A DNA stretch of 64,000 nt. Source: Setoptus koraiensis (taxonomy: Eukaryota > Animalia > Arthropoda). Positions 10,336 to 25,254 of this stretch are shown in pieces. A program made the translations under genes and the position numbers. Positions within the stretch are counted from its first letter, which is position 1; each line of letters begins with the position of its first letter. The stretch covers positions 7,564,001-7,628,000 of the forward strand of contig CM106585.1 in the NCBI GenBank assembly GCA_048013815.1. Reading direction: 5' to 3'. The notes beneath the pieces are model-generated. The model was not told the origin of the DNA and ran no database searches. It worked only from the letters and a program-made list of their open reading frames with translations.

Positions 10336-11911
10336 AGTAACCCTCAATGAACAATAAATTGTATGTTGATGAGTTTCTTCTAGGTAAACTACAAATAAAG
10401 CTGTACGCTTTTATTGAATCCTCGACAAAATTGACATAATATCGCCTCTAATCAAACTGTATTTGGTCTAAGAACTTCTTATCTCAAATGTATATATATA
10501 TGTGAAAGAGCGACATGACACCTGTTTGGGTTCCCATATTCGTACCAAGATTATACAGCCGCGCTAGATGTGGGAACATCTATTCGACAGCTCAAATGTG
10601 TATGCGAGACCACCATCGCTCATGAGACACTCAAGTTGGTTTAGTTCCTGATAATCAATACATCTAATTGATTATTGTCTCGATCTCTTTCTACTGTGAT
10701 GAGAATGGACCTCGTCTGTAGAGTATATTGCGTCTAGTTTGCCAATCATGTTTTTCGAGTTTCGAACAAGGTATCGTGCTCTCCATGTACGATTGTCATT
10801 GAGGTCACACTGTTTCCTATCGATGAATCCCATGAACGGCACCTCTTATCGAATCATCTTCATATAGGGGTTTGTACTAGTTTACTTTTACTATTTTATG
10901 ATGACGGATGACTCAAATGAAGTTGTCGAGTCATTTGATGTGGCAAAAAACACTTTTCGACTTTGACCTTACCAAGGTATTACAAAGATCACTGATCGAG
11001 AGGATGATCGTTGCAAGTCATAGCTTGTGTATTTTGTTTGAATAAATGATAGATAAACAGCAGAAATGTCGTAATAGAGTGTAATAAATGCTGATTATAC
11101 GTATTCTGTATGTGCACAATACAGCCGTGTGGTATGTTTTGCGCTAATCTACTCGCATAAAGATGAAATAGACATCAGATTATTCGCGGCTGCCTAGAAC
11201 AATTTGATTCGTTTTGTCGGAAATTTTAACGTTTTCCCATTCTCTGAGGAGCGAGTGTCCACGAGAGGATGGTATCAAATTATACAAAACTATTGGAAGA
11301 TGATAAACTGCATCACTTGATTGATGCGTATCTGCAATTTTCAATCAATTTCTCATTGTTTTCCAGATAGACTCTTATAATGGAAGTTGGAGATTTTTAG
11401 AATATCTCCCTTTGATCTCACATGGGCGTCATATTAGAATCTAAAACCTTTCATACTCAAACAGATACATATGTAGAGCAACAACAATGCTGATAGTGAG
11501 GCGCGCAAGAACTATAGCAACAGAAGCTTCCACTAAGCTGTTGATTACGCCGATAATAAAAGATCTTTCAACTTTTATAACTGGCTTGACGTTCTCTAAT
11601 CCTTGAGTGGTGTTAAATAACAATCGTCGGGTCGGCCTATAAATTATGCGCAAATTGTATTCTATGAAATTTTAAATACAATTTTAATTCCAAAACTAGC
11701 CATTTATATCGTTTGCATGTAACATCAGATTGAAATTTTTAATTATCAGTTGTCAATCTCACCCCGGCTGTTTATTTGTACTTGTTTATTTACAAAACCG
11801 AAAATGCCTCTCTTGATCGGAGATTTTCCATTATTAACCACAAGTAATCTACGAGAAAGAACAATTGACCTAAGTATGCCTCATAAGAAGAGATCTACCG
11901 AACCAAGTTGC

Positions 11912-13798
11912 ATGATGATTCAACTAAGCTATAAAACATGTAATCGTTACAACCATCTGTCAAGTGTCTCACTATTGTATTTGTCACTACTTTCAACGAT
12001 ACCCATGGCTAGTTTTGAAGACATCTCTGCGGTAACCAGGTCAAGTCAACCGATCGACACTACAGGTGCGATCAATCTACCGGTCAATCCAAGTCCCAGC
12101 ATCAATACCGACGATGATCCAAATGAGATTCAAAATGCAAGAAAGGAGCTGATTGATTATAGTACTGCTGTAATAGATTCATTAGATTTCAAAGACAAAA
12201 TCAACAGGCCTGTGGAATTCAAACATCACAATGCAAGAGAATTGCACGAGCAATTGACGCATTTGAACAGGTTATATCCTAATCTCACCAGATTATATAG
12301 TGTTGGTAAGAGTGTAAGTGGAGAACATTTATGGGTTTTAGAAGTAAGTGACAAAGCTGGACAACATGAAATCATGAAACCCGAATTCAAATACGTGGCA
12401 AATATGCATGGTAACGAGGTTGTCGGACGCGAACTTCTGCTATTGCTTGCGCGTCTATTGTTGGACAATTATCAGGAGGAGCCAAGTGATCCCATGGACG
12501 ATCCACCCAGTCAACAGTTTGTAAGAAAGTTGCTCAAGTCGACGAGAATACATCTAATGCCGAGTATGAATCCCGATGGATATAAAAACTCCGGTTTGGG
12601 CTGCGTCTTTGAGCCCGTAAGTCGTAGAGGCCGTCTGAATGAAAACAACATTGACTTGAACAGAAACTTTCCAGATCGCATTATAGAGAATACTGTTGAC
12701 TTAAACACTCAACCGGAAACTCGAGCTATCATTGAATGGTCAAAATCGATTCCATTTGCATTGGGTGCAAATCTTCACGGGGGCAAGTCTATATGATAAT
12801 CTAATGATGATGATAAGTAATGAATTGTAAGAACTTGAATCAATTTTCACTGCTAATGAACAAAATTTACATATTATAGGTGCTTTGGTTGTTTCGTACC
12901 CATTTGATGCAACAAAAAACTCATCCACGACAGGAGAGGCTGCTCTAACTCCTGACGATGAACTTTTCAAGCATCTAAGCAAGGTATATTCAAATGTAAG
13001 TAATCGTCGCTAATACTATCATCCTGTTATCAAAATCATTAGATTGTGTTCACTCCTGATTTATTCTTTTTGGTTTGCTTGTCTAATCTTTAGAATCATG
13101 AGAACATGTACAAGAATGAAATGTGCTACGATTTTTGTGGTCACTATCATCAAGAGATATTCACTGATGGCATAATCAACGGTGCTTCTTGGTACCCTTT
13201 ATATGGCACTATGGCTGATTGGTTGTATACCAACACTAATCAATTAGATCTCACTATAGAGGTGGGTTGCAATCAATTTCCTCCCTCCATTGAACTGGAG
13301 AGATATTGGAACTACAATAAGAGGGCATTAATAAGCTACATCAAAGAAATACACAGAGGCATCAAAGGTATTATTTTAGACGACAGGACCGGAAAAGCAT
13401 TAGCTGGTGTTCGTGTCAAGGTTTACGGTATCGAGAAAGATGTATTCAGCTCAGCCTATGGCGATTTTTGGCGTATACTTGTACCGGGTTCTTATTATGT
13501 TCAATTTTCCAAAAGAGGCTACGAACCATCACGTAAAGCACATGTATTCGTCTCTTCTTTCATGGCAACTATAATAAGAGTTAACCTAGTTCCCTTAAAA
13601 TCATTGGGACAAAGATCTAGTACACCAAGAGGCGACACTATTTTGGATGAGATTAAAACCGAAAATAAATCCTCTGGTTCGAATGCCTCAACAATACTGT
13701 GGATTCTCGTTGTTGCTCTCGTAATTGCTGTGTCAGGTGGAGTATTCATCCTGAAAAGGCGAAAGAATAACAAGAATCAATCATTGGAAATGAGTTAA
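11912..13798 (+). CDS. M14B metallocarboxypeptidase (CPD/CPM-like) with one catalytic domain and a C-terminal TM helix; 3 exons; start codon uncertain
   Basis: Zinc ligands HGNE and NLHGG, NRNFP, ASWYP, catalytic Glu in TIEVGC, a transthyretin-like domain (RGIKGII...GDFWRILVPG) and a TM segment (TILWILVVALVIAVSGGVFIL). Exons are ..12782, 12880-12995 and 13094-13798. The first intron is GC-AG. Confidence 0.9.
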
Positions 13799-14348
13799 AG
13801 TAGTAGCCAACTGGAATATTATTGATGGTAACTACAATGAGCATACTGTATCGGGCTCGACCTGTCGTTGCAGGTAGTCTATAGAATAAACATCGATAAA
13901 ACTAAATATCACTATAATAGTTATAGGACAGAGCACATGAATAAATTCTTTTCATCAGCTTGGTTTATTATTTCATTTTTATTATGCCTCTAACTAATAT
14001 CTTGAAGATTGACTGGGGCTTGGGAATGACTGGAGTTACACACATTAAAACTCTCACTAGCGACCTAGGTTAGATAAGGAGTATTTTGGTTAATCTGAAT
14101 TATTTCGGATGATAATCTACCGTATTTCTTGTGTATAAATAAGAACAAGGCTGATAATAGGAAGCATATACCGCCAACAATAATCGATCGATTCGATTAT
14201 TGTGAGCGGATAAATGTAATTTAATCCTTTGAAATGCATCAGAGATCTTACAAGTTCGCTTGTGCGAAGGCAGAATATTGTGGGATGGTGTGATACTTCG
14301 AATGATGTCATCACGTTCTCATTGTTTTCAATTCGATTTGAAAGCGCT
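13725..14348. repeat. Copy 1 of a local segmental duplication (blocks 13725-14184 and 14214-14348)
   Basis: 13725-14184 matches 18057-18516 with 5 mismatches in 460 bp (hand comparison). 14214-14348 matches 19540-19673 with about 5 differences, including a 1-bp indel. Confidence 0.95.
14065..14184 (-). pseudogene. CDC50A 3'-terminal relic (last ~40 codons only)
   Basis: Nearly identical to 18397-18516, the C-terminal end of the intact CDC50A. The rest of the CDS is absent and the sequence jumps to a copy of the CDC50A upstream region. Confidence 0.88.
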
Positions 14349-14964
14349 TTCGAGGCGATAGGAATTTAGAATTTGCTTCAGCAATGCTTGTGATATGCGT
14401 GTATGCGTATTTGTAAATGTATACAACAGGTAGTGGATAATAAAAAATAATCGTCACATGGCATAGTTTACTGATCTTATCCTATGGTTGATGGCATTCA
14501 GCAACAGAACAGGTTCTTGATCTTGCTTGATTCTCGAATGAGTAGAGTTTAATACACAAATGAGTCACCATCGACTAACCTATTGAATTTTGACAGTGGA
14601 ACAATGACGCCATTGCGTGCCAGCGTGTTTTCAATGTCAGTAATTAGTATCGAATAGTCACGTACTTTTTGTTTGTATTTGTATTTGAAATGTGTCAGTT
14701 GTACACAACGTGAAAACTCTGAAGAATTTTTGATGTCTTCAGCACATAAACCTATTTATCTCTGTGATTTAATATCTATTTAGTCAGCACGGAGTCACCA
14801 TGGAGTCACCATGGAAAGTCAAAGGGAAACGGAAGAGGAAATGGCGGCGACAATCAATTCAGCGTCATCTATTGTAAGTGACATATTGTTTGTTGCAGTC
14901 TCGTCGCATCTCAAACGCTCAAATGAATACCTGGACACTGTACATTTGATACAGAGCAACACGC

Positions 14965-17900
14965 ATGGCTAGAAGAAGCGAACCAGCGTCAATTTGTGTC
15001 CAGATTGCGGTGGGCCTGATAAAGGTTTTGATGCTCATTTTCGATATCATCACTTTGCCTTGTTATTTCTTTTGGCAGCGACCAGATCTTCGAAGGCAAG
15101 CCGCTTACCAGTTGAAATCGGAACGAGTGGACGATAATACCTGGATAAAGACGACAAGAACAACAACCAATTGTTTGATAAACAGCAAAATCCATCGCAA
15201 CAGAAGCCAGTATGACAACAATAAAGCCTTTTATTCGTTTGACAAAAGGGTCACGGCCAAAAGTAGACAAAAATACAATTTCAAAGGATCCACATTAAAT
15301 GAAATATTTGCCAATTCCGTCATCGAACACAGTGCCAGGCCCTGTTTGGGCTACAGGGCCCTCATAACATGCCCCGTTGTTGTTCACGACAAACAAGGCA
15401 GGCAAACACTGCAAGAGAAAAGTTTTCGCAGCGACTTCACCTGGTACACCTATGAACAAGTGGGCAGACGCGTCCAAGATATCGCCTCCGGATTGTATGC
15501 TCACTCTATTTATCCCAATTCTAGAGCTCTCATATTCGGCGACAGTTCACTGGAATGGTTTATAGCGGCCCACGCTTGCTTTCAACTGGGCATACAATTG
15601 GTACTGGCGCCCGATATTAACGATGCCAAAATATTGGCCTCTATAGTGAGAGAGGCCAAAGTGGAGTCAATATTCGCTTCGTGCACTAAATTGGACTTAA
15701 TCAACAGATTGTTCGAGTGCGTCCGGCACGAAATGAGTGAAACTGGGCCAGAGACAGGAAAGACGTCGATTGCGGTGAAACAGATTGTCTTAATTGATTG
15801 GCAGTTTTCAATTGATTTCAACGAGCCCGATTTCGGTGCACTCAAACAAGCGACAAAAAATCTCGTCGGAAATATTCTGGCCATGGGCAAAATCGAGGAG
15901 AGAGGCTCAGAGAACCCCATTGAGTTGGGGTGCCGCTTGAAATTCATGGCCGATTGTGGCGACGATGCCCAGAAACTGCCATCGTCGTTGCTGCAAGACG
16001 AACCGTTTCTGACTCACAGACTCACCGGCGGTTATAGTCGGTCCACTCTGGATGTGGCCGCTCGAAGTGCCGACAACGAGCCCCAAGACAGCAAGACGAC
16101 CAGAAACAACTACAAAAATGATGTTCAACACAGCACCAGTGCGAGGCATCGAACCAGGAGCCAAGGCAGTGATCGCAACACAAACCCGCCCTCGGAAAGT
16201 TTCAATTTCAGCCACAATTTTGGCCGTACGAATGGTATCGCTCCGCTGGTGGCAAACGGAAAAACAACAAACAACAGAAGGGCGGCTGAATTCAAGAGGC
16301 CCGAACCCGATGATCTGGCCATGATTGTCTACAGCTATGGTTCGATGCGAAAACTAAAAGGTGTCACGCTCACTCATGCCTGTCTGGCGCGTTGCAATCA
16401 CTATTCGTTCTTGGATGGCATCATTCAGGACGATGATTTTCATTGTGCCGTTTTGCCATTGGACAATCTGTTTGAATTTATCACAGAAATGTGCCTGTTT
16501 AGTCGGGGTGCCTCAATTGGTTATTCTTGCGGCGCCGAGACACTGTTCTACGACGGAAGCGAGCTCACTAATAAGCGAGATCGTTGCGATTTGGAGGCTC
16601 TGAAGCCCACCTTTCTGGCCACTCGTCCGGTCATGCTAGAGCGATTTAGAGCGGCCATAAATGCGTTCATTGGCGACAAAATGAATCCCATTCTTAGCTA
16701 TTTAATGATAAATGTCATATATGACTACAAGAGATATTGGGCAAAAAACTACTACAACACGCCGCTGATTGACAGTTTGTTTTGTTCGAGATTGCGAGCG
16801 CTGTTGTTTGGCTGTAGGGCAAAATTCATTTTGTGTCATGGCGCAACAAAATGTTCCGAAACAAAAGATTTCTTTGCCTTCATGGTGAACATACCTATCA
16901 TTGAATTGTACGGCCAGACAGAGGCAATAGTGAGCATGATGTCAGCCATAGACATATGGGACTTTCACGAGAGTAATCACGGCAAAAAATACGAATCCAT
17001 AAGAGAGCGTCTACTATTGCATCAGGCACAGGGACCTCAGCCGGACTTTCAGCAGATACAATTGATGCCTTCGACAACAAACAGCAATCTCACCATAAAG
17101 GAAAGCTCAAAGAATCTGCTGATAACGTCGTCGGTGTTTTGTCCCACGCAACACATGCGCATCAGATTAGAGGATTGGGGCGATTTCCGCACCACCGATT
17201 TGCCCTATCCGAGGGGCCGGCTAATTGTGGGCGGCGACATTGTTGGCAGGGGCTATTTCAACGATCGTCATCAGCAACTGACAGACAAATTGTTTTACGT
17301 GGACTCAAACTTTATTAGATGGTTCAAAACGGAGGACATAGCCCAGGCGCTACCAAACGGCACCTTCGAAATAATATCGTGCATGTCTGATTTGATCAAG
17401 ATGGCCGACGGTCATTTTATATCGCTCGGTCAGGTGGAGCAAATATTGCGCAACAGTCAATTTGTGGATAATGTTTGCGCTATTTGTTGCGAAGAGCGAA
17501 AGTTCCTCATAGCGTTGGTGGTGCCCAATTTGCAACGCTTGGCACTAAAGTCGCCCGGCGCCGATGACATCAAAATGGCCATAGGTATTGGCGGGCCGGA
17601 ACCGGACGAATTGAACGACATTGATTTGCGGCGCGAGGTTTGCAACGACCGGCTGCTGTGCGAGTTCGTCAACAATCATCTCAGCGAGTTGGTGCTGAAA
17701 GCGGGCCTACAGGCCATTCCGAAACGCTTTCACTTGGTGGCGGAGATATGGACGCCAGAATCGGAACTGGTGACGCCGTCGTTGAAGCCCTCTAGGAGGA
17801 ACATTGAGAAATTTTATGCCTGCGAAATAGAGACAATATTCAAGACGGAATTTGTGAGGTCGCCGAGCGAGCGCCGACTGAAGCTGCTGAGGATGAAAAA

Positions 17901-18015
17901 GATCAGACAGCAGGGCTGTAACGGGGCCGGCGGAAACGCGTCGCGTCTGGACAAGAGCGCCCACCACAGCAGGATGCTGTCGCCCGCCGACAACTCGCTG
18001 AGGCTGTCGATCTGA
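14965..18015 (+). CDS. Long-chain acyl-CoA synthetase (ACSL3/4)-like protein, intronless, with degenerate ATP-binding motifs
   Basis: 1016-aa ORF with an ACSL3/4-type N-terminus (IFDIITLPCYFFWQRP), FTWYTYEQV, LKPTFLATRP, YGQTE, RLEDW...DLPYPRG, ISLGQVEQIL...FVDNVC and EIWTPESELVTPSLK. The P-loop reads YSYGSMRKLKG. Confidence 0.88.
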   Translation: MARRSEPASICVQIAVGLIKVLMLIFDIITLPCYFFWQRPDLRRQAAYQLKSERVDDNTWIKTTRTTTNCLINSKIHRNRSQYDNNKAFYSFDKRVTAKSRQKYNFKGSTLNEIFANSVIEHSARPCLGYRALITCPVVVHDKQGRQTLQEKSFRSDFTWYTYEQVGRRVQDIASGLYAHSIYPNSRALIFGDSSLEWFIAAHACFQLGIQLVLAPDINDAKILASIVREAKVESIFASCTKLDLINRLFECVRHEMSETGPETGKTSIAVKQIVLIDWQFSIDFNEPDFGALKQATKNLVGNILAMGKIEERGSENPIELGCRLKFMADCGDDAQKLPSSLLQDEPFLTHRLTGGYSRSTLDVAARSADNEPQDSKTTRNNYKNDVQHSTSARHRTRSQGSDRNTNPPSESFNFSHNFGRTNGIAPLVANGKTTNNRRAAEFKRPEPDDLAMIVYSYGSMRKLKGVTLTHACLARCNHYSFLDGIIQDDDFHCAVLPLDNLFEFITEMCLFSRGASIGYSCGAETLFYDGSELTNKRDRCDLEALKPTFLATRPVMLERFRAAINAFIGDKMNPILSYLMINVIYDYKRYWAKNYYNTPLIDSLFCSRLRALLFGCRAKFILCHGATKCSETKDFFAFMVNIPIIELYGQTEAIVSMMSAIDIWDFHESNHGKKYESIRERLLLHQAQGPQPDFQQIQLMPSTTNSNLTIKESSKNLLITSSVFCPTQHMRIRLEDWGDFRTTDLPYPRGRLIVGGDIVGRGYFNDRHQQLTDKLFYVDSNFIRWFKTEDIAQALPNGTFEIISCMSDLIKMADGHFISLGQVEQILRNSQFVDNVCAICCEERKFLIALVVPNLQRLALKSPGADDIKMAIGIGGPEPDELNDIDLRREVCNDRLLCEFVNNHLSELVLKAGLQAIPKRFHLVAEIWTPESELVTPSLKPSRRNIEKFYACEIETIFKTEFVRSPSERRLKLLRMKKIRQQGCNGAGGNASRLDKSAHHSRMLSPADNSLRLSI

Positions 18016-18056
18016 TTTGACTCTGGTATCTAGGCCGTGTTTATATAATATGCAAG

Positions 18057-18516
18057 TTGCTGTGTCAGGTGGAGTATTCATCCTGGAAAGGCAAAAGAAT
18101 AACAAGAATCAATCATTGGAAATGAGTTAAAGTAGTAGCCAACTGGAATATTATTGATGGTAACTACAATGAGCATACTGTATCGGGCTCGACCTGTCGT
18201 TGCAGGTAGTCTATAGAATAAACATCGATAAAACTAAATATCACTATAATAGTTATCGGACGGAGCACATGAATAAATTCTTTTCATCAGCTTGGTTTAT
18301 TATTTCATTTTTATTATGCCTCTAACTAATATCTTGAAGATTGACTGGGGCTTGGGAATGACTGGAGTTACACACATTAAAACTCTCACTAGCGACCTAG
18401 GTTAGATAAGGAGTATTTTGGTTAATCTGTATTATTTCGGATGATAATCTACCGTATTTCTTGTGTATAAATAAGAACAAGGCTGATAATAGGAAGCATA
18501 TACCGCCAACAATAAT
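18057..18516. repeat. Copy 2 of the duplicated block (carboxypeptidase C-terminal tail, shared 3' UTR interval, CDC50A 3' end)
   Basis: Constant offset of 4332 bp from 13725-14184. It begins 41 bp after the ACSL-like stop codon. Confidence 0.95.
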
Positions 18517-19473
18517 ATAGGCTATTCCAAGAAAATTATTTTTTCCTCCTAGCCATGATGTGTTGGATAGAATAAAGCGCTTTGTGCCACCAAATACTAC
18601 AACTGGATAGTTGTAATTTACAATGAGGTAATATTTACCCTTAGTCAAGACGGAGTCTTTGGTTGAAGAATCATTTTGAACAATACCCCAAAGTTTCCTA
18701 AAAGTTGGCAATGCAGCAGTTCGCATCCAGACAATAAGATCTTCATTCTGGAAACCATTGTTGCTTGGATCTTTTTTGAGCTCAGAAACTCGTTTCCGCC
18801 AGTTAGGTGGTTTAACAGTATTCGCAAAAGCTAATGTAAGATTATCGGCAGGTTTAGGGTTCTGAAATCTGATATTCTTATCAGACGACCAGGCAATTCC
18901 TTTTTTTGAGATAGACACTTCAATGTTAGTGCTCGCCTTGGTAAGTTTAAAGGTATCATTAAATAGGCTATTGGCGATAGCGCCACAGGGAGCTACTGGC
19001 CTGCGTATACCATTTTCGTCGTTTGCATAGTCAAACGGATAGCACTCGCTGCCCACTGATTGTGGATTTCCCAATAATTGAAGGTCATCTCGTGATTTAA
19101 CATAACGTCGGTGGTTCTGATAAAAATTTGTCAGACTATAATAAACAAAAACGTCCTTTTTGAAATCTTCTGGTAGATTAATTGTAATATTGCACACGCA
19201 GGAAGAATTTGAGGGATTTTTTTGTGATGTATACTGTCCAGGTATTGGTGCAGTTGCATTTGCACACGATAGATTAGTATTATCCTTAGATTTGCAATTT
19301 GTGTAATCTATTATTAACTCTTGTACAGATGTTGATGACATCAATAAACCAATTCCGATAGGCACAAAAGCAACTCCTATCAAGAAGAAGGTAGGCAAAA
19401 TGGTTCCAGCTGTCAGAATAGGCTGCCAGGCAGGTAGATTCTGTTGTTTAAAAGATGGTTTATCTTTTCCCAT
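18397..19473 (-). CDS. TMEM30A: P4-ATPase flippase beta subunit CDC50A/TMEM30A, intronless
   Basis: FKQQNLPAWQPILT, a first TM, FYQNHRRYVKSRD, VAPCGAIANSLFND, NEDLIVWMRTAALPTFRKL, SWLGGKNNFLGIAYI and a second TM. ATG at 19473. Confidence 0.95.
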   Translation of the reverse strand: MGKDKPSFKQQNLPAWQPILTAGTILPTFFLIGVAFVPIGIGLLMSSTSVQELIIDYTNCKSKDNTNLSCANATAPIPGQYTSQKNPSNSSCVCNITINLPEDFKKDVFVYYSLTNFYQNHRRYVKSRDDLQLLGNPQSVGSECYPFDYANDENGIRRPVAPCGAIANSLFNDTFKLTKASTNIEVSISKKGIAWSSDKNIRFQNPKPADNLTLAFANTVKPPNWRKRVSELKKDPSNNGFQNEDLIVWMRTAALPTFRKLWGIVQNDSSTKDSVLTKGKYYLIVNYNYPVVVFGGTKRFILSNTSWLGGKNNFLGIAYIIVGGICFLLSALFLFIHKKYGRLSSEIIQINQNTPYLT

Positions 19474-20027
19474 GATGACGATAATAATAATCAATTGGGG
19501 ACCAATATTATAGCAATTCCCACAATTATTTGTGGATGTATGTAATTCAATCCTTTGAAATGCATCAGAGATCTTACAGTTCGCTTGTGCGAAGGCAGAA
19601 TATTGTGGGATGGTGTGATACTTCGAACGATGTCATCACGTTCTCATTGTTTTCAATTTGATTCGAAAGCGCTAAATTCAAACTACAGTTTTTTTCGGAG
19701 AAAGTTCCAGGGGTCGCTACAATCGACTATTGCATGCGCTCAACTTGAGTGACCCAACCTGCGGCAACGTGTTGCAGGCTGCAACTTGCAGCGTGGTACG
19801 TGTAAAATATAGGCATTTATGTTAAGGTCAGCAATCTGGGCTAGTGTCTAGTCATAGCTCATCACATTCCAAAGTCCGGATAGATTAGAGTTTTGTTTGC
19901 CATTTATACAACATCAACTCCGTTTATATTCACTGCCAATCTAGATCCGAACATATAATCTGCTTATACTATATTTTGATCCGCATATTTTTGTTGAAAA
20001 TCTTACAACAGTTGAAAATTAGCGAAG

Positions 20028-21212
20028 ATGGACGAAGAGTTGGACTTGTTAAAGAATTCGCCATTGTTGAACGCCAAAGAGGGAACTTACGCCACTAGAG
20101 CTGTAAAGGCTGAAACACATGCAGATGGATCGCATAGTGTTGAATACGAAGTCGAGGAGCAGTTCTTTGATGAGAACGAACAAAATCTTGAGGAGGAGGC
20201 AACAGCCATGTTGGACGTTTGGAATAACATATTCACTGACAATTCCGATCTGCTAGATCTCAATCCAATATTCTCAAGCAAAACTGATGAAGATGACGAT
20301 GATTGTGGGTCCTTTGATGCAATGCAAACAAAAATGACGCCGATACAGGAAGATCAGGTCTTCATAAAGATTGTTCACTCTAATCCAACGGGCAAGCCAG
20401 TTACCCATTACAGTAGTGTATTGTACGATGTTGTTGGCTATTTGGAATACAATGACAACCCATTTGACAATTCTATTTCCAGGGGCGTGCCAATGTTCCA
20501 TCGTCTGCACAAAGACGGATTATTGCCAGGTGTGAGGATCGGACTAATGCACATGAGACAGGGAGAAAGAGCCCAAATCTTGATCAAACCAAAATATGCA
20601 TTCAAGGAATTAGGCTGTCCTCCTCGTGTGCCTGCTAACTCAACTGTGCTCTTTTCGATAATATTACACAAAACATGGGAAGAGAGTCCGCTTGAAGACT
20701 ATCTTGCTTCGAATCATAACGTAGAGGATTGGCCCTATGATCAGCGTTATGAGATGTGCATCAAGCAAAAAGAGGCTGCAAATCAATTCTTTAGAGATAT
20801 GCGCCTAAAAGAAGCCCTCGTTCGCTACAAAGCTGCCATAAAATGTCTCGACGAATTTCCGGCAATACTGTTAGCCGATCCATCATCCAAAGAAGCCAAA
20901 CTTCTAACAATTCTCCTCCAAAATGCAATGGTCATCTACAACAAGTTGCGCATGGCAAGAGCGGCAACTAAAACTGCCAAAAGACTATTAGAGAGCGATC
21001 CGAAAAATTTAAAGGCGTTGCACGGCATGTGCAAGGCGAGAATCTGCCTGGGCGATTACGATAAAGCATTAATTTATATCAAGAAAGCGGCTTCGATCGC
21101 GCCGGACCATAAGGATTTCGACAACTTGAAAAGTGAACTTGACTATCAAAAACGAGAAGACAGAAGAAGAAGTGAAGAACTTATGTCGAAAATGTCAAAA
21201 GTTTTCAGATGA
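20028..21212 (+). CDS. shu: FKBP6/shutdown-like FKBP-TPR co-chaperone, intronless
   Basis: Acidic N-terminus, one FKBP domain with YAFKELGCPPRVPANSTVLF (FKBP6-type CPP motif), then TPR repeats (QKEAANQFF...ALVRYKAA, KALHGMCKARICLGDYDKA). Confidence 0.82.
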   Translation: MDEELDLLKNSPLLNAKEGTYATRAVKAETHADGSHSVEYEVEEQFFDENEQNLEEEATAMLDVWNNIFTDNSDLLDLNPIFSSKTDEDDDDCGSFDAMQTKMTPIQEDQVFIKIVHSNPTGKPVTHYSSVLYDVVGYLEYNDNPFDNSISRGVPMFHRLHKDGLLPGVRIGLMHMRQGERAQILIKPKYAFKELGCPPRVPANSTVLFSIILHKTWEESPLEDYLASNHNVEDWPYDQRYEMCIKQKEAANQFFRDMRLKEALVRYKAAIKCLDEFPAILLADPSSKEAKLLTILLQNAMVIYNKLRMARAATKTAKRLLESDPKNLKALHGMCKARICLGDYDKALIYIKKAASIAPDHKDFDNLKSELDYQKREDRRRSEELMSKMSKVFR

Positions 21213-21564
21213 TTGAATAAATGTACAGTTGTGTCCTTAACTGGAAGGATAGTTTCTCTTGATTTTTTATCTAGGGGCCTTTTCCTTGCCCACCTTTTAA
21301 TCTTATACTACAGGAAATTAGGTATATTGGCCAATAGGGGCCGCATTGATAAATAAGTCCAGTTTGAAACAATACATTCCTGGCATTCTACAGTAGAGTA
21401 GGTGTGATGTACAAAAAATGAATGCGCATGTCGATAGTAGTTAAAGTATAAACCGCTTCTTAGTCAGTGCGGGGGCGGTCGTTTATATCACAGTGACTGT
21501 CAAACATATATACTGTACAACAGAATATTGTCGTCATGGATACTCTTCTTTTTATGTGAATTTA

Positions 21565-24500
21565 TCAGACTTTGATTGTTTTTTCTGGTGACGACATTTT
21601 ACCGTCACCACCCGCACTATAAGCCAGGACTCTCAACTTGTATTCCTCTCCGCGAATCAGATCATCAATAGTGGCGGTCAATTCTTTGCCGCCTAGTTTT
21701 ATGTCGATAACTTTAGCCTTAGAGATATTTTCATTAGTTCTCCAGTAGCGAACCTTATAGCCAAGAATAGGCTCTTCGTCCGTTGACACCGTCGACACGC
21801 CACGCCACCTGACTATCACACTATCAGAAACTGACGGGCTCACTTCGACGCTCGTTGGAGGTCTCAGTGGGGCCGATTTGTAGGTTTTAATGCGGAAAGA
21901 TTCACTCTGAGGTCCACTACCTGCGTCATTGTATGCCATTACAACCAGCTGATATTCGGTATCTGGCATAAGACCTACAATCAATCCCCAAGTCTTAAGT
22001 CCACGCTTCAAGGTGGTTAGAGAATCTGTTTGAGGGTTTCGCTTGCTTGGCCAATACTTGATGCGATATCCGACAACTTTATCATTGTTTTCTGGCACAT
22101 CTTCGACAATTGGCGACCAAGTGACATTGAGCGATGTAGAATTGAAAGCAACCGCATACACACTGCTCGGTTGTATATTAGGCATCATTTGAGCTGAGTA
22201 AATATTGGCACGATTAGGTGGTCCAACACCAATACGATTAACGGGAAATACGGCTACATTGTATAGTTTGTATGAGTTATCGGTGCCTACACTTATTGTG
22301 TAAGCGCTGCGATTTCCGGCCGCTTTCAACTCTTGTCTTTCGTAGTCCTGTGACTCATTCCGTTTGTAATGAACCATATACCAGATCTCGTCATCGCCCC
22401 AAAGAGCTCGAGGCAATGGGTCCCATCTGATAACAAGTGTGCCTGCTTTACCTCCACCGCCATTTAGGTTAGTTACTGCGTATCGCGGTTCGGAGGCCTC
22501 AGTCTTATACTGAGGACTAGGTGCCGAAGGTTCACCTATTCCGTGTTCGTTTGCACTAGACACGCGAAACATATACTGAGTGTTCGGCAAGAGATCCGAT
22601 ATAACGAAGTAGCGTCTGAAATATTGGAGACGCACAGATTGGGAAACTTTCAGGAGAGGCGCGTCAAATACTCGATTGGCTATAACTGTCCACGTCGAGT
22701 TATAATTCGTTCTAGCTTCTATAGTATGCGACGTGATTCTACTTCCGTGATTGTAGCCATCTGTCCAGGTAATCCGGGCTCGATTGCCAGTTTGTATTTC
22801 AGCAACTACCTGGCCGCATGGATCGGGCGGACCTTCAACGATGAGCCGGCCGCTAAATTCGACAGAGCCAACCGAGGTTTTGGCTTGACATGTATAGTTA
22901 GCTTCATCGACATAAGTTATATTATGCAGCACTAAACTGCCCGATTCACTTTTAGAGAATTTTTCGCCATCAGATTCGAAGTTTATCTTAATGCCATTCT
23001 TGTACCACACATGAGATATTTCCTGATTTTTATTGCCTATCACATCACAAGGCAGAACCTTAAAGGCATCTCCATATCTTGCAAGTTCGCGAACCAACAA
23101 TCGATTTGTGTCCATTGGCTTCGACAAAACAACCAACCAAGTAGATGTTCTTGGCCTCACAGTGTCTCCAAGTACTCCTACTTGCGAGGCAACACACTCA
23201 TACTTTCCTTCGTCTTCCAGTGTTAGATTCTTTATATACAAAAAGTTGTTCTTGAGTTTTTCAATTGTTCTCGAATAGTAACTTATCTCTCTATTGAATA
23301 GAGGCTGTCCGTTCTTATACCATTCAATCTTGTGAGCTTGTGGGAGACCCTCTGGGGCGCAGGCCAACGTTATCTCTTGTCCTACCATGGCATGAGTAGA
23401 ACTAGGTAAGGCATACTTGTTAAAGTTGAGCCTGAATTCCCCCACTTTTACCTGAGCTGTACTGAAGGCGCTACCGTGTTGATTGATGGCTGCACATTGA
23501 TACATACCGGCATCATGAAAACTTATGCCGTTGATTGACAGCGTTGAGATCTTGTCAGAGTTAATTATTATGTATCTAGAATCGACAATTTGTGACGTAT
23601 CTTGACCATCTTTGTACCATGTATAGGTGACGGCCGGCAATCCAAATGCTTCGCAAGTTAGCGTCATCGTTTCACCAGGATATAATATTTGATCTTCGAT
23701 GGGTTGAGTGAATTTAGGTGTAGCTTGAACGCTTACATAAACAGACTTTTGTATAAAATAACTGTCCAATACTGCCGTACAAATATATTCTCCTTCGTCC
23801 TCTATTTTAATCTTGGGCAACGACAACACTTTACCATCATTCAAAATTCTAAACTGATCTGGAAGTCGATTAGTTGTGCCTGTTCTAGTCCAATTGTAAC
23901 TCGGCGTTGGATAACCATAAGCCATACACTCTAACCTGACCTCTTGGCCCGCGAAGGGACCCTCTGGGAAGACCTTGGGAAAATCGTTGGCAAATTGTAA
24001 CTTTTGACCACTACTACCTGAGTCTACGTACAAGGGGAACGATGGTCCTGTCCTGCCTGTTGATGAAATAACACTCTGCACATTGCATGAATAATTGGCC
24101 CGATCTATCTTCTCTAGCGATGAAAAGTATAAATTACCATCGCGAGATATGAAAATTCTGGGACCTTCCGTAACAAAGTTTGGAAACTCAGAACGAGACC
24201 AGTAGTAATTCAAAGTTGATGGTCTACGAGAAGGAGCATCGCAAGACAATGCTTTGCCCCAATTTTCTTGGCCTCTCTCAGGAGATCGTTTTTTGGTGAA
24301 TTCCGTTATATAACCGAATTGTAATGTTATCTTTTTGCTTATAACTATACCATACCTATTTCTAGCCTGGCATTGGTATTGAGCTCTGTCAATTTCGGCA
24401 AGTGGATTCGAAATAATGAGTGTACCATCTGTCAATGTGAATCTATTGTCGCTTAAGACATCAATTTCTCTTCTAGAATCGCTACTGTCACTACTAGGCT

Positions 24501-25254
24501 CGTATTTGAACCATTTATATTCTGGTTCCGGATAAGCATCGGCAACACAGCGTAGCTTAACTTGATTAGATTGAGATCTCCCGCTTATATCAAAAATGAC
24601 ATCGTCAGGTTCGTTTACAATTTTGGGACCACGTTCCAGCTTGCTCTTATCGTATACATCTTGGCCATAATCTATATATTTGTCAGTCGAAATAAACAAT
24701 TTATTTTTCGAAGCCTCGCACACAACGCCCGTGACAATGTCCCCCATAAGCACTTGGGTCAGTCCCCATCTACCTGATGGTGCATGATATTTGTAGCAAG
24801 CTTTCAAGGCACCACCGCTGAATTGCGTGACATTGCTTTGGGCCTCTTTTGGTAACCACAAGTCTACTATGTTATTCAGGTTGCTCTGATCGCCAGACCA
24901 TCTCCAGTTGCTCATTGAATCTTTCAGTCCGCTGGTCAGCCATGTCCTCTTGTGTGGATCATTGTTTTGCAACCAATCAATTATGAATTTGTTTTCATTA
25001 TAATTGTTGACACTAACAAGCTGAGCGTTGTAGTTCTTGCAAAGCAAAGCTCTATCTGGTATGAAATTCGAGTTGTCCTTTTGTTGAGGATTCAAGCGCA
25101 TAAATCTGTAACAAGATTTTTCATATTTCACCCATCCGCGTGGACATTCCTGAATAAAAGTTGACTGTGAAGATACAACTTCAAGTATGAACACAATAAG
25201 TACTACTGATAAGATTAATTGCTGTCCTAATGAATTTGTCATGTTTGAATACAT
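21565..25254 (-). CDS. Cont: Contactin (arthropod type: C-type lectin, Ig and FN3 domains), intronless
   Basis: Signal peptide, CTL domain (CPRGWVKYEKSCY), multiple Ig domains (e.g. DRAQYQCQARN, DAGMYQC) and four FN3-like units ending VLAYSAGGDGKMSSP. Confidence 0.92.
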   Translation of the reverse strand: MYSNMTNSLGQQLILSVVLIVFILEVVSSQSTFIQECPRGWVKYEKSCYRFMRLNPQQKDNSNFIPDRALLCKNYNAQLVSVNNYNENKFIIDWLQNNDPHKRTWLTSGLKDSMSNWRWSGDQSNLNNIVDLWLPKEAQSNVTQFSGGALKACYKYHAPSGRWGLTQVLMGDIVTGVVCEASKNKLFISTDKYIDYGQDVYDKSKLERGPKIVNEPDDVIFDISGRSQSNQVKLRCVADAYPEPEYKWFKYEPSSDSSDSRREIDVLSDNRFTLTDGTLIISNPLAEIDRAQYQCQARNRYGIVISKKITLQFGYITEFTKKRSPERGQENWGKALSCDAPSRRPSTLNYYWSRSEFPNFVTEGPRIFISRDGNLYFSSLEKIDRANYSCNVQSVISSTGRTGPSFPLYVDSGSSGQKLQFANDFPKVFPEGPFAGQEVRLECMAYGYPTPSYNWTRTGTTNRLPDQFRILNDGKVLSLPKIKIEDEGEYICTAVLDSYFIQKSVYVSVQATPKFTQPIEDQILYPGETMTLTCEAFGLPAVTYTWYKDGQDTSQIVDSRYIIINSDKISTLSINGISFHDAGMYQCAAINQHGSAFSTAQVKVGEFRLNFNKYALPSSTHAMVGQEITLACAPEGLPQAHKIEWYKNGQPLFNREISYYSRTIEKLKNNFLYIKNLTLEDEGKYECVASQVGVLGDTVRPRTSTWLVVLSKPMDTNRLLVRELARYGDAFKVLPCDVIGNKNQEISHVWYKNGIKINFESDGEKFSKSESGSLVLHNITYVDEANYTCQAKTSVGSVEFSGRLIVEGPPDPCGQVVAEIQTGNRARITWTDGYNHGSRITSHTIEARTNYNSTWTVIANRVFDAPLLKVSQSVRLQYFRRYFVISDLLPNTQYMFRVSSANEHGIGEPSAPSPQYKTEASEPRYAVTNLNGGGGKAGTLVIRWDPLPRALWGDDEIWYMVHYKRNESQDYERQELKAAGNRSAYTISVGTDNSYKLYNVAVFPVNRIGVGPPNRANIYSAQMMPNIQPSSVYAVAFNSTSLNVTWSPIVEDVPENNDKVVGYRIKYWPSKRNPQTDSLTTLKRGLKTWGLIVGLMPDTEYQLVVMAYNDAGSGPQSESFRIKTYKSAPLRPPTSVEVSPSVSDSVIVRWRGVSTVSTDEEPILGYKVRYWRTNENISKAKVIDIKLGGKELTATIDDLIRGEEYKLRVLAYSAGGDGKMSSPEKTIKV

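Follow-up and report, generated by a model that had tools for sequence, protein, structure and literature searches.

Genes can change their chromosomal position by duplication followed by reciprocal loss, as with JYAlpha in Drosophila and with essential genes transposed between Arabidopsis accessions. Plasmids, prophages and yeast integrative vectors use single-crossover (Campbell-type) integration, which sets the insert between direct repeats of its target; to our knowledge, this is not a known route of germline gene movement in arthropods. A third related system is error-prone repair. In C. elegans, polymerase-theta end joining yields tandem duplications with junctional microhomology and occasional insertions (PMC7368036); its authors refer to Vaughn and Bennetzen (2014) and Schiml et al. 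(2016) on the origin of duplications from adjacent single-strand breaks. Here we describe a locus of the arthropod Setoptus koraiensis in which an ACSL-like gene stands between two direct copies of a segment around the gene CDC50. The locus lies in a stretch of 64,000 nucleotides (nt), below called the window (assembly GCA_048013815.1, contig CM106585.1, positions 7,564,001 to 7,628,000 of the forward strand), to which all coordinates refer. Comparison of gene orders indicates that the position of the ACSL-like gene is derived, and the gene has probably been relocated through a single microhomology-mediated event.

The locus resembles the tandem duplications made by polymerase theta (PMC7368036) in its head-to-tail, kilobase-scale copy, the insert at the junction and about 3 nt of putative microhomology. 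It also resembles polymerase-theta repair products in a nearby deletion that carries a short palindromic filler. Far longer than typical templated insertions, the insert comprises an entire functional gene of 3.7 kb together with its promoter, and unlike the events seen in repair mutants or tumours, the locus is fixed in natural populations. With the JYAlpha and Arabidopsis relocations it shares a single-copy gene at a new locus, an old locus that apparently holds remnants only, and purifying selection; unlike in those cases, the junction scars and the target duplication can still be read, and the loss of the donor is what we infer. As in single-crossover integration, the insert lies between direct repeats of the target and could in principle pop out through them, but it contains host chromosomal sequence only, with no sign of a circle. 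The locus is thus a well-preserved new example of a known change, in which a gene is relocated by tandem duplication with junctional insertion; it represents no new type of element and reveals no new mechanism.

Architecture of the duplicated locus

We designate the two copies of a 460-nt repeat A (copy 1) and A' (copy 2), the two copies of a 150-nt repeat B (copy 1) and B' (copy 2), and the insert U. The joints are J1, the deletion joint between A and B; J2, between B and U; and J3, between U and A'. The features, in order of position, are as follows.

11750-12796 and 13106-13798 (exon open reading frames, ORFs), plus strand: carboxypeptidase D-like gene (Pfam Peptidase_M14 and CarboxypepD_reg), collinear with contig L006 of the closest sampled relative.
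13725-14184: repeat A, copy 1, with the genuine carboxypeptidase tail and 3' untranslated region (UTR) and a redundant CDC50 3' UTR with the last ~40 codons.
14185-14198: filler at J1, palindromic, as seen in alignments, DNA fold and a 128-nt bridging contig.
14199-14348: repeat B, copy 1, a copied CDC50/shu intergenic piece (just upstream of CDC50) that now lies 5' of U.
14349-18056, plus strand: insert U, single copy, made up of a 616-nt upstream region, the ACSL-like ORF and a 41-nt 3' flank.
14965-18015, plus strand: ACSL-like ORF of 1016 amino acids (aa), intact (Pfam PF00501 AMP-binding, E 2.3e-29, in two stretches).
18057-18516: repeat A', copy 2, with a redundant carboxypeptidase tail and 3' UTR and the genuine CDC50 3' end.
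18397-19473, minus strand: CDC50, intact, 358 aa from the first ATG (Pfam CDC50, E 4e-98), 89% identical to protein P0019 of the relative.
18517-19524: segment found in copy 2 only (CDC50 body), defined by alignment, at single-copy depth, deleted from copy 1.
19525-19673: repeat B', copy 2, the native CDC50/shu intergenic piece.
20028-21212, plus strand: shu-like gene (Pfam FKBP_C and TPR), the right neighbour of the duplicated target, collinear with L006.

A (13725-14184) and A' (18057-18516) are 98.9% identical over 460 nt, with 5 substitutions and a spacing of 4332 nt, as found alike by repeat search, pairwise alignment and self-BLAST. B (14199-14348) pairs with B' (19525-19673) in direct orientation (repeat search and self-BLAST), with a robust core of 14208-14348 against 19534-19673 at 95% identity and one 1-nt indel. 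The runs from A to B and from A' to B' are collinear and in the same orientation, which makes the arrangement a head-to-tail direct duplication of a target of about 1.6 kb. Between A' and B', copy 2 holds the 1007 nt of the CDC50 body (18517-19524), in place of which copy 1 has a filler of 13-14 nt. U, a unique segment of 3708 nt, begins directly after B and runs up to A'. The final 74 coding nt and the 3' UTR of the carboxypeptidase gene fall within A. An earlier reading made from the letters alone (the sequence-only reading) had described this layout, with 5 differing sites in the 460-bp block and reciprocal loss of the redundant parts. Its gene calls agree with Pfam, its repeats with alignment and self-BLAST, and its count of differences with pairwise alignment; copy 1 lacks the CDC50 body, and copy 2 has the carboxypeptidase tail only.

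Four public runs, including X1, X2, X3 and X7, were mapped on 13400-19390 as Logan contigs. The depth of block A is 237 in run X1, against 111 and 107 for the unique flanks, and 230-258 in run X2, against 94 and 130. U is recovered as one Logan contig of 3556 nt at single-copy depth, and the CDC50 body is likewise single copy. Three runs have a 128-nt contig across J1 (14155-14282), which is at single-copy depth in X1 and X2, and a contig of X3 spans J3 (17997-18123); these bridging contigs come from runs in separate studies. The depths fit a fixed or homozygous insertion and not a heterozygous or chimeric structure. The sequence-only reading had allowed for a single copy misassembled from merged haplotypes; the roughly twofold depth of A relative to its flanks in both X1 and X2, together with the joint-bridging contigs, shows the duplication to be real.

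Ancestral gene order and source of the insert

The best named relatives of the CDC50 protein are from the eriophyoid mites Fragariocoptes setiger (68% identity) and Aceria tosichella (63%), and the host is itself an eriophyoid. The closest sampled relative is Logan run SRR33593474 (89% aa identity for CDC50 and 82% for the ACSL-like protein), represented by contigs L006 and L001. On L006, the Ig/Fn3 gene, shu, CDC50 and the carboxypeptidase gene are contiguous, with no gene between them, and DNA alignment shows the contig to be collinear with the window at 12244-14184 and then from 18275-19734 onward. A and B each occur once on it. On L001, the ACSL-like gene is flanked by two MIF genes. An ACSL-like gene arranged tail-to-tail with a minus-strand MIF gene is also present in two distant species (L002-L005, and L009; 49% and 47% aa identity), but not in two others (L010, L011). 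Neither a carboxypeptidase gene nor CDC50 was found near the ACSL-like gene on contigs L001-L005 and L009-L011, and neither a MIF gene nor a second ACSL-like gene was found in the 64-kb window. In the distant eriophyoids L007 and L008, the genes around CDC50 differ from those of the window, which makes these contigs uninformative on synteny.

The gene order of L006, the ACSL-MIF adjacency in relatives and the absence of a MIF gene from the window together indicate that the order carboxypeptidase-ACSL-CDC50 is derived. The ancestral order of the target, as these contigs indicate, is carboxypeptidase-A-CDC50-B-shu. Synteny with related species, which the sequence-only reading had singled out as a check, bears it out: in the relative, carboxypeptidase directly adjoins CDC50, A and B are single, and the ACSL-like gene lies elsewhere.

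Two further observations concern the ancestral neighbourhood. The MIF gene upstream of the ACSL-like gene on L001 (593-973) encodes a protein that starts MAFLE, without Pro1, and carries an aromatic extension at its C-terminus, SSFFFPQQ. On L002, a second AMP-binding gene, of 917 aa, lies on the strand opposite to the ACSL-like gene and about 7 kb away from it (19984-22737; also on L003-L005), with 26% identity over 580 aa to the window protein. We read it as an old paralogue in the ancestral neighbourhood.

The homology between U and L001 extends beyond the coding sequence. Specifically, nucleotide identity is 80-85% within the ORF (14965-17908) and about 70% upstream (14487-14705), and the MARRSEP start and the upstream block are common to the window and L001. 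U thus carries 616 nt of native 5' region, and only 41 nt beyond the stop codon. In Aculops lycopersici, a sequenced eriophyoid, introns are absent from 83.7% of genes, and neighbouring genes lie a median of 538 bp apart (PMC7738191); the 616 nt exceed this typical intergenic spacer of the clade. No poly(A) tract is present at 18016-18056, and no inverted repeats of at least 40 nt were found by repeat search within 11-23 kb. U has no terminal inverted repeats (the best end-to-end alignment scores 13 over 15 nt). Its termini read TTCGAGG... and ...ATGCAAG, and neither Helitron-type ends (5'-TC/CTRR-3') nor a short target duplication is found, in line with the sequence-only reading, which had seen no transposon termini.

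The upstream homology, together with the missing poly(A), terminal inverted repeats and short target-site duplication, indicates that U is a DNA-level copy, neither a retrogene nor a recognisable transposon. A retrogene was considered and discarded on the absent poly(A), the co-transferred upstream region and the 1.6-kb flanking repeat. The sequence-only reading had also stressed that the gene is intronless; the 1016-aa ORF indeed has no introns, but with most eriophyoid genes intronless (PMC7738191) this is the norm of the clade and no sign of retroposition.

Runs X1-X3 contain extra contigs, at approximately single-copy depth, whose homology to the window is confined to 14346-14579 (about 4-10% different; about 92-95% identity) and 17966-18059 (3 differences; 97% identity). 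Their outer flanks are unlike the window, and inward they diverge from U; the overall difference between this second locus and U is about 20 in 339 nt (6%). The homology ends 3 nt past each U junction, with GCT at J2 and TTG at J3; these overlaps, common to the target and the probable donor, are putative microhomologies. For a random blunt join, the probability of at least 3 nt of microhomology is about 0.05 per junction. The 30-nt donor-flank sequences have no match in the window, L001 or JGI metagenome contigs. The depth over the interior of U is flat, which argues against a second intact copy; at 88% identity or more, the read sets contain none. The second locus is probably the gutted donor of U. 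On the simplest reading of these contigs, the original locus survives only as remnants, and the gene would have been relocated, not merely duplicated.

Probable mechanism of the relocation

J1 retains a distinct repair scar. The filler, CGATCGATTCGAT(T), is itself palindromic, and the end of A, ACAATAAT, and the start of B, ATTATTGT, are mutually complementary. In a DNA fold, filler and flanks form a perfect hairpin stem of 11 bp (-14.7 kcal/mol, z -5.6). J1 has the look of error-prone end joining in which snap-back synthesis took part. For the 24 nt at the left end of B, an origin as a snap-back copy of the end of A was also considered (p about 0.014). This was rejected: in the alignment with the outgroup, 14199-14222 is homologous to B and resembles the relative more closely than copy 2 does. 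With 14199-14222 true B sequence, the filler is only 13-14 nt.

We favour, with moderate confidence, one microhomology-mediated event in which the target was tandemly duplicated with U at the junction, followed by deletion and loss of the donor, the outcome being relocation of the gene. A single event is favoured by the position of U exactly at the head-to-tail duplication junction and by putative microhomology at both joints. The starting state would be carboxypeptidase, A, CDC50, B and shu, with the ACSL-like gene elsewhere, tail-to-tail with a MIF gene. A single germline accident of repair or replication would then have duplicated the 1.6-kb A-CDC50-B segment head to tail and inserted, precisely where the two copies meet, 3.7 kb of DNA copied from the ACSL-like locus, with about 3 nt of microhomology used at J2 and J3. 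Two routes could lead there: staggered breaks that are filled in while ectopic DNA is captured or copied, or replicative template switching (microhomology-mediated break-induced replication, MMBIR; fork stalling and template switching, FoSTeS; or joining of the type of theta-mediated end joining, TMEJ). In the same event or later, the 1007-nt deletion with its palindromic filler would have stripped the spare CDC50 body from copy 1. The original ACSL-like copy would have been gutted afterwards, which would make the net result a relocation. The relocated gene would have stayed under purifying selection, most likely served at its 5' end by the upstream region that came with it and at its 3' end by the duplicated poly(A) signals of the carboxypeptidase gene.

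Four points weigh against this reading. First, templated insertions by polymerase theta are typically shorter than 3.7 kb. Second, the divergence between U and the donor (6%) exceeds that between A and A' (1.1%), though it is like that between B and B' (5%). Third, the evidence for the microhomologies and the donor consists of soft-clip boundaries and of 30-nt consensus sequences at the loose ends of unread contigs. Fourth, none of the listed Logan contigs spans J2; the support for this joint comes from the assembly itself and from the share of sampled words present in the runs (0.95-0.99).

The divergence of the two repeats differs significantly (1.1% for A/A' against 5% for B/B'; Fisher p 0.009). 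This uneven divergence may mean that A is constrained or gene-converted, or that the steps were not simultaneous. When polarised with L006 as outgroup, three of the five substitutions between A and A' fall on copy 2, two of these in the redundant carboxypeptidase tail, and all three polarisable substitutions of the B core fall on copy 1. This indicates that redundant parts drift while working parts are held. The nearest relative is far more diverged, with synonymous divergence (dS) of 0.44-1.1 and noncoding identity of about 70-84%. Beside these values the copy divergences are small, consistent with the recent date given in the sequence-only reading.

A plain tandem duplication of A-CDC50-B, into which U was later inserted by an unrelated event, is unlikely. 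The divergence of U from its donor, about 6%, is unlike the 1.1% of A/A', as two separate dates would have it, but it agrees with the 5% of B/B'. Moreover, U sits precisely between B and A' with no target bases lost or gained, and a chance hit on that point in more than 3 kb is improbable.

Campbell-type integration, in which a circle that carried the ACSL-like segment and a copy of A-CDC50-B entered the resident locus by one homologous crossover, is to our judgement just as unlikely. It predicts precisely the structure seen, with direct copies of the target on either side of an insert, and the microhomologies at J2 and J3 could stem from the formation of the circle. It takes three steps, namely two end-joinings between two loci and then a crossover, against one microhomology-mediated event, and no circle or episomal sequence is evident, and U shows nothing beyond host-locus sequence. 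The sequence-only reading had offered both circle integration and tandem duplication with insertion. Both give the end structure, and the final sequence cannot separate them; the putative 3-nt microhomologies and the palindromic filler point to error-prone end joining or template switching, neither of which needs a circle.

A stronger form of the circle reading, in which the 4.3-kb unit is an integrated chimeric circle still able to pop out by recombination between A and A', and run X7 represents a cassette-free population, is highly doubtful. If true, an animal germline would contain a reversible gene cassette that behaves like an episome. X7, which is labelled as a different organism (C), contains carboxypeptidase and CDC50 sequence at 99% identity or more (13409-13750 and 18290-19390) and nothing of U. 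It also holds a donor-like piece of 94 nt (17966-18059). X7 was not relied on as an empty-site population: its depth is 5-8x, and its CDC50 contig stops in a transcript-like manner at 18290, just past the minus-strand AATAAA. The run may represent a population without the insertion, or an RNA or low-depth data set.

Capture of the ACSL-like gene by a transposon (Pack-TE, Helitron or similar) or its retroposition is very improbable. Of U, only the two ends recur at the second locus, a pattern also expected of copies of a mobile element. These ends are ordinary ACSL-locus sequence, being L001-homologous upstream sequence on one side and the family-conserved C-terminal coding tail on the other, and U has none of the marks sought above (terminal inverted repeats, 5'-TC/CTRR-3' ends, poly(A), short target-site duplication). 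In addition, a target-site duplication of 1.6 kb matches no transposase, and intronlessness is genome-wide in these mites (PMC7738191).

Finally, an assembly artefact from merged haplotypes, or an ancestral carboxypeptidase-ACSL-CDC50 order later lost by the relative, is hardly credible: near-identical repeats are a classic source of misassembly and only one close relative is at hand, but the double depth of A beside the single-copy depth of J1 and U in X1 and X2, and the J1 contigs of three runs and the J3 contig of X3 from separate studies, oppose the former, while the ACSL-MIF adjacency in the close relative and two distant species, and the single A and B of the relative, oppose the latter.

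The relocated gene and its surroundings

The ACSL-like protein is 82% identical in aa sequence to P0001, its orthologue in the closest relative. Compared with L001, the gene has a dS of 1.10 and a ratio of nonsynonymous to synonymous divergence (dN/dS) of 0.094; the dS of the neighbouring genes is 0.44-0.84. Within the C-terminal half of the protein, dN/dS is 0.013-0.05, against 0.09 overall. The C-terminal RLSI motif of the window protein is common to distant family members. The low dN/dS, the intact ORF and the family C-terminal motif together indicate a working gene under purifying selection.

In P0001 (L001 3174-6035), the reading frame stops about 36 codons early and the C-terminal motif RLS(I/Y/H) is missing. 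We considered whether the GC-rich tail at the C-terminal end of the window ORF (17909-18015) might be foreign filler from a third gene; this was rejected, since distant members share the RLS(I/Y/H) ending and P0001 is the truncated one. At the other end of the protein, no exon for the MVYK N-terminus of distant homologues was found in the window or L001.

The family comprises 16 full-length relatives at 42-82% identity, apparently all from eriophyoid mites; exact-sequence look-ups of the window's own CDC50 and ACSL-like proteins gave no record. The ACSL-like protein resembles ACSL proteins (ANL superfamily) in its AMP-binding domain, LYGQTE and TPSLKP are kept, and one source labels a relative 'long-subunit acyl-CoA synthetase'. 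Unlike in ACSL, the phosphate-binding motif is degenerate across the family: it reads YSYGSMRKLKG in the window protein and GSLGQ(I/L)K in family members. The canonical (T/S)SG(T/S)TGxPKG is not found in the window protein, and the aligned PDB adenylation domain has YTSGSTGLAKG. Also unlike ACSL, the family has a long, variable low-complexity insert at about residues 330-445, and PDB matches are distant only (adenylation domains of nonribosomal peptide synthetases, E 4e-13). The protein is conserved but possibly not a classical acyl-CoA synthetase.

The 41-nt 3' flank of U contains no AATAAA. The first AATAAA signals past the ACSL-like ORF, at 18217 and 18272, lie inside A' and are copies of the carboxypeptidase signals at 13885 and 13940, the former of which is conserved in the relative. 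It is plausible that the ACSL-like gene ends at these duplicated carboxypeptidase signals. At its 5' end, it most likely uses its own upstream region; with the 616 nt brought along in U, it need not depend on the duplicated promoter piece B.

On the minus strand of copy 1 (13965-14348), B, the CDC50-proximal promoter piece, is joined to the last ~40 codons of CDC50, its 3' UTR and copies of the poly(A) signals. From this remnant of B and A, a short non-coding RNA could be transcribed on the minus strand, toward the carboxypeptidase 3' end.

Beyond shu, on the minus strand (21565-25254), the window holds one ORF of 1229 aa with a C-type lectin domain, five Ig and three Fn3 domains. Its C-terminal Fn3 portion is DSCAM-like, and it is 91% identical to the gene of the relative.

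The locus is a natural, fixed relocation whose repair scars, those of the two insertion joints and of the single deletion joint, are all still legible, and for which both the empty target site and the ancestral context of the donor can be read in a close relative. It documents the movement of a gene in a streamlined, transposon-poor arthropod genome. The relocated gene came with its own promoter and probably leans on the duplicated terminator of its neighbour. Duplicate-then-lose geometry of this kind can cause hybrid incompatibility between populations.

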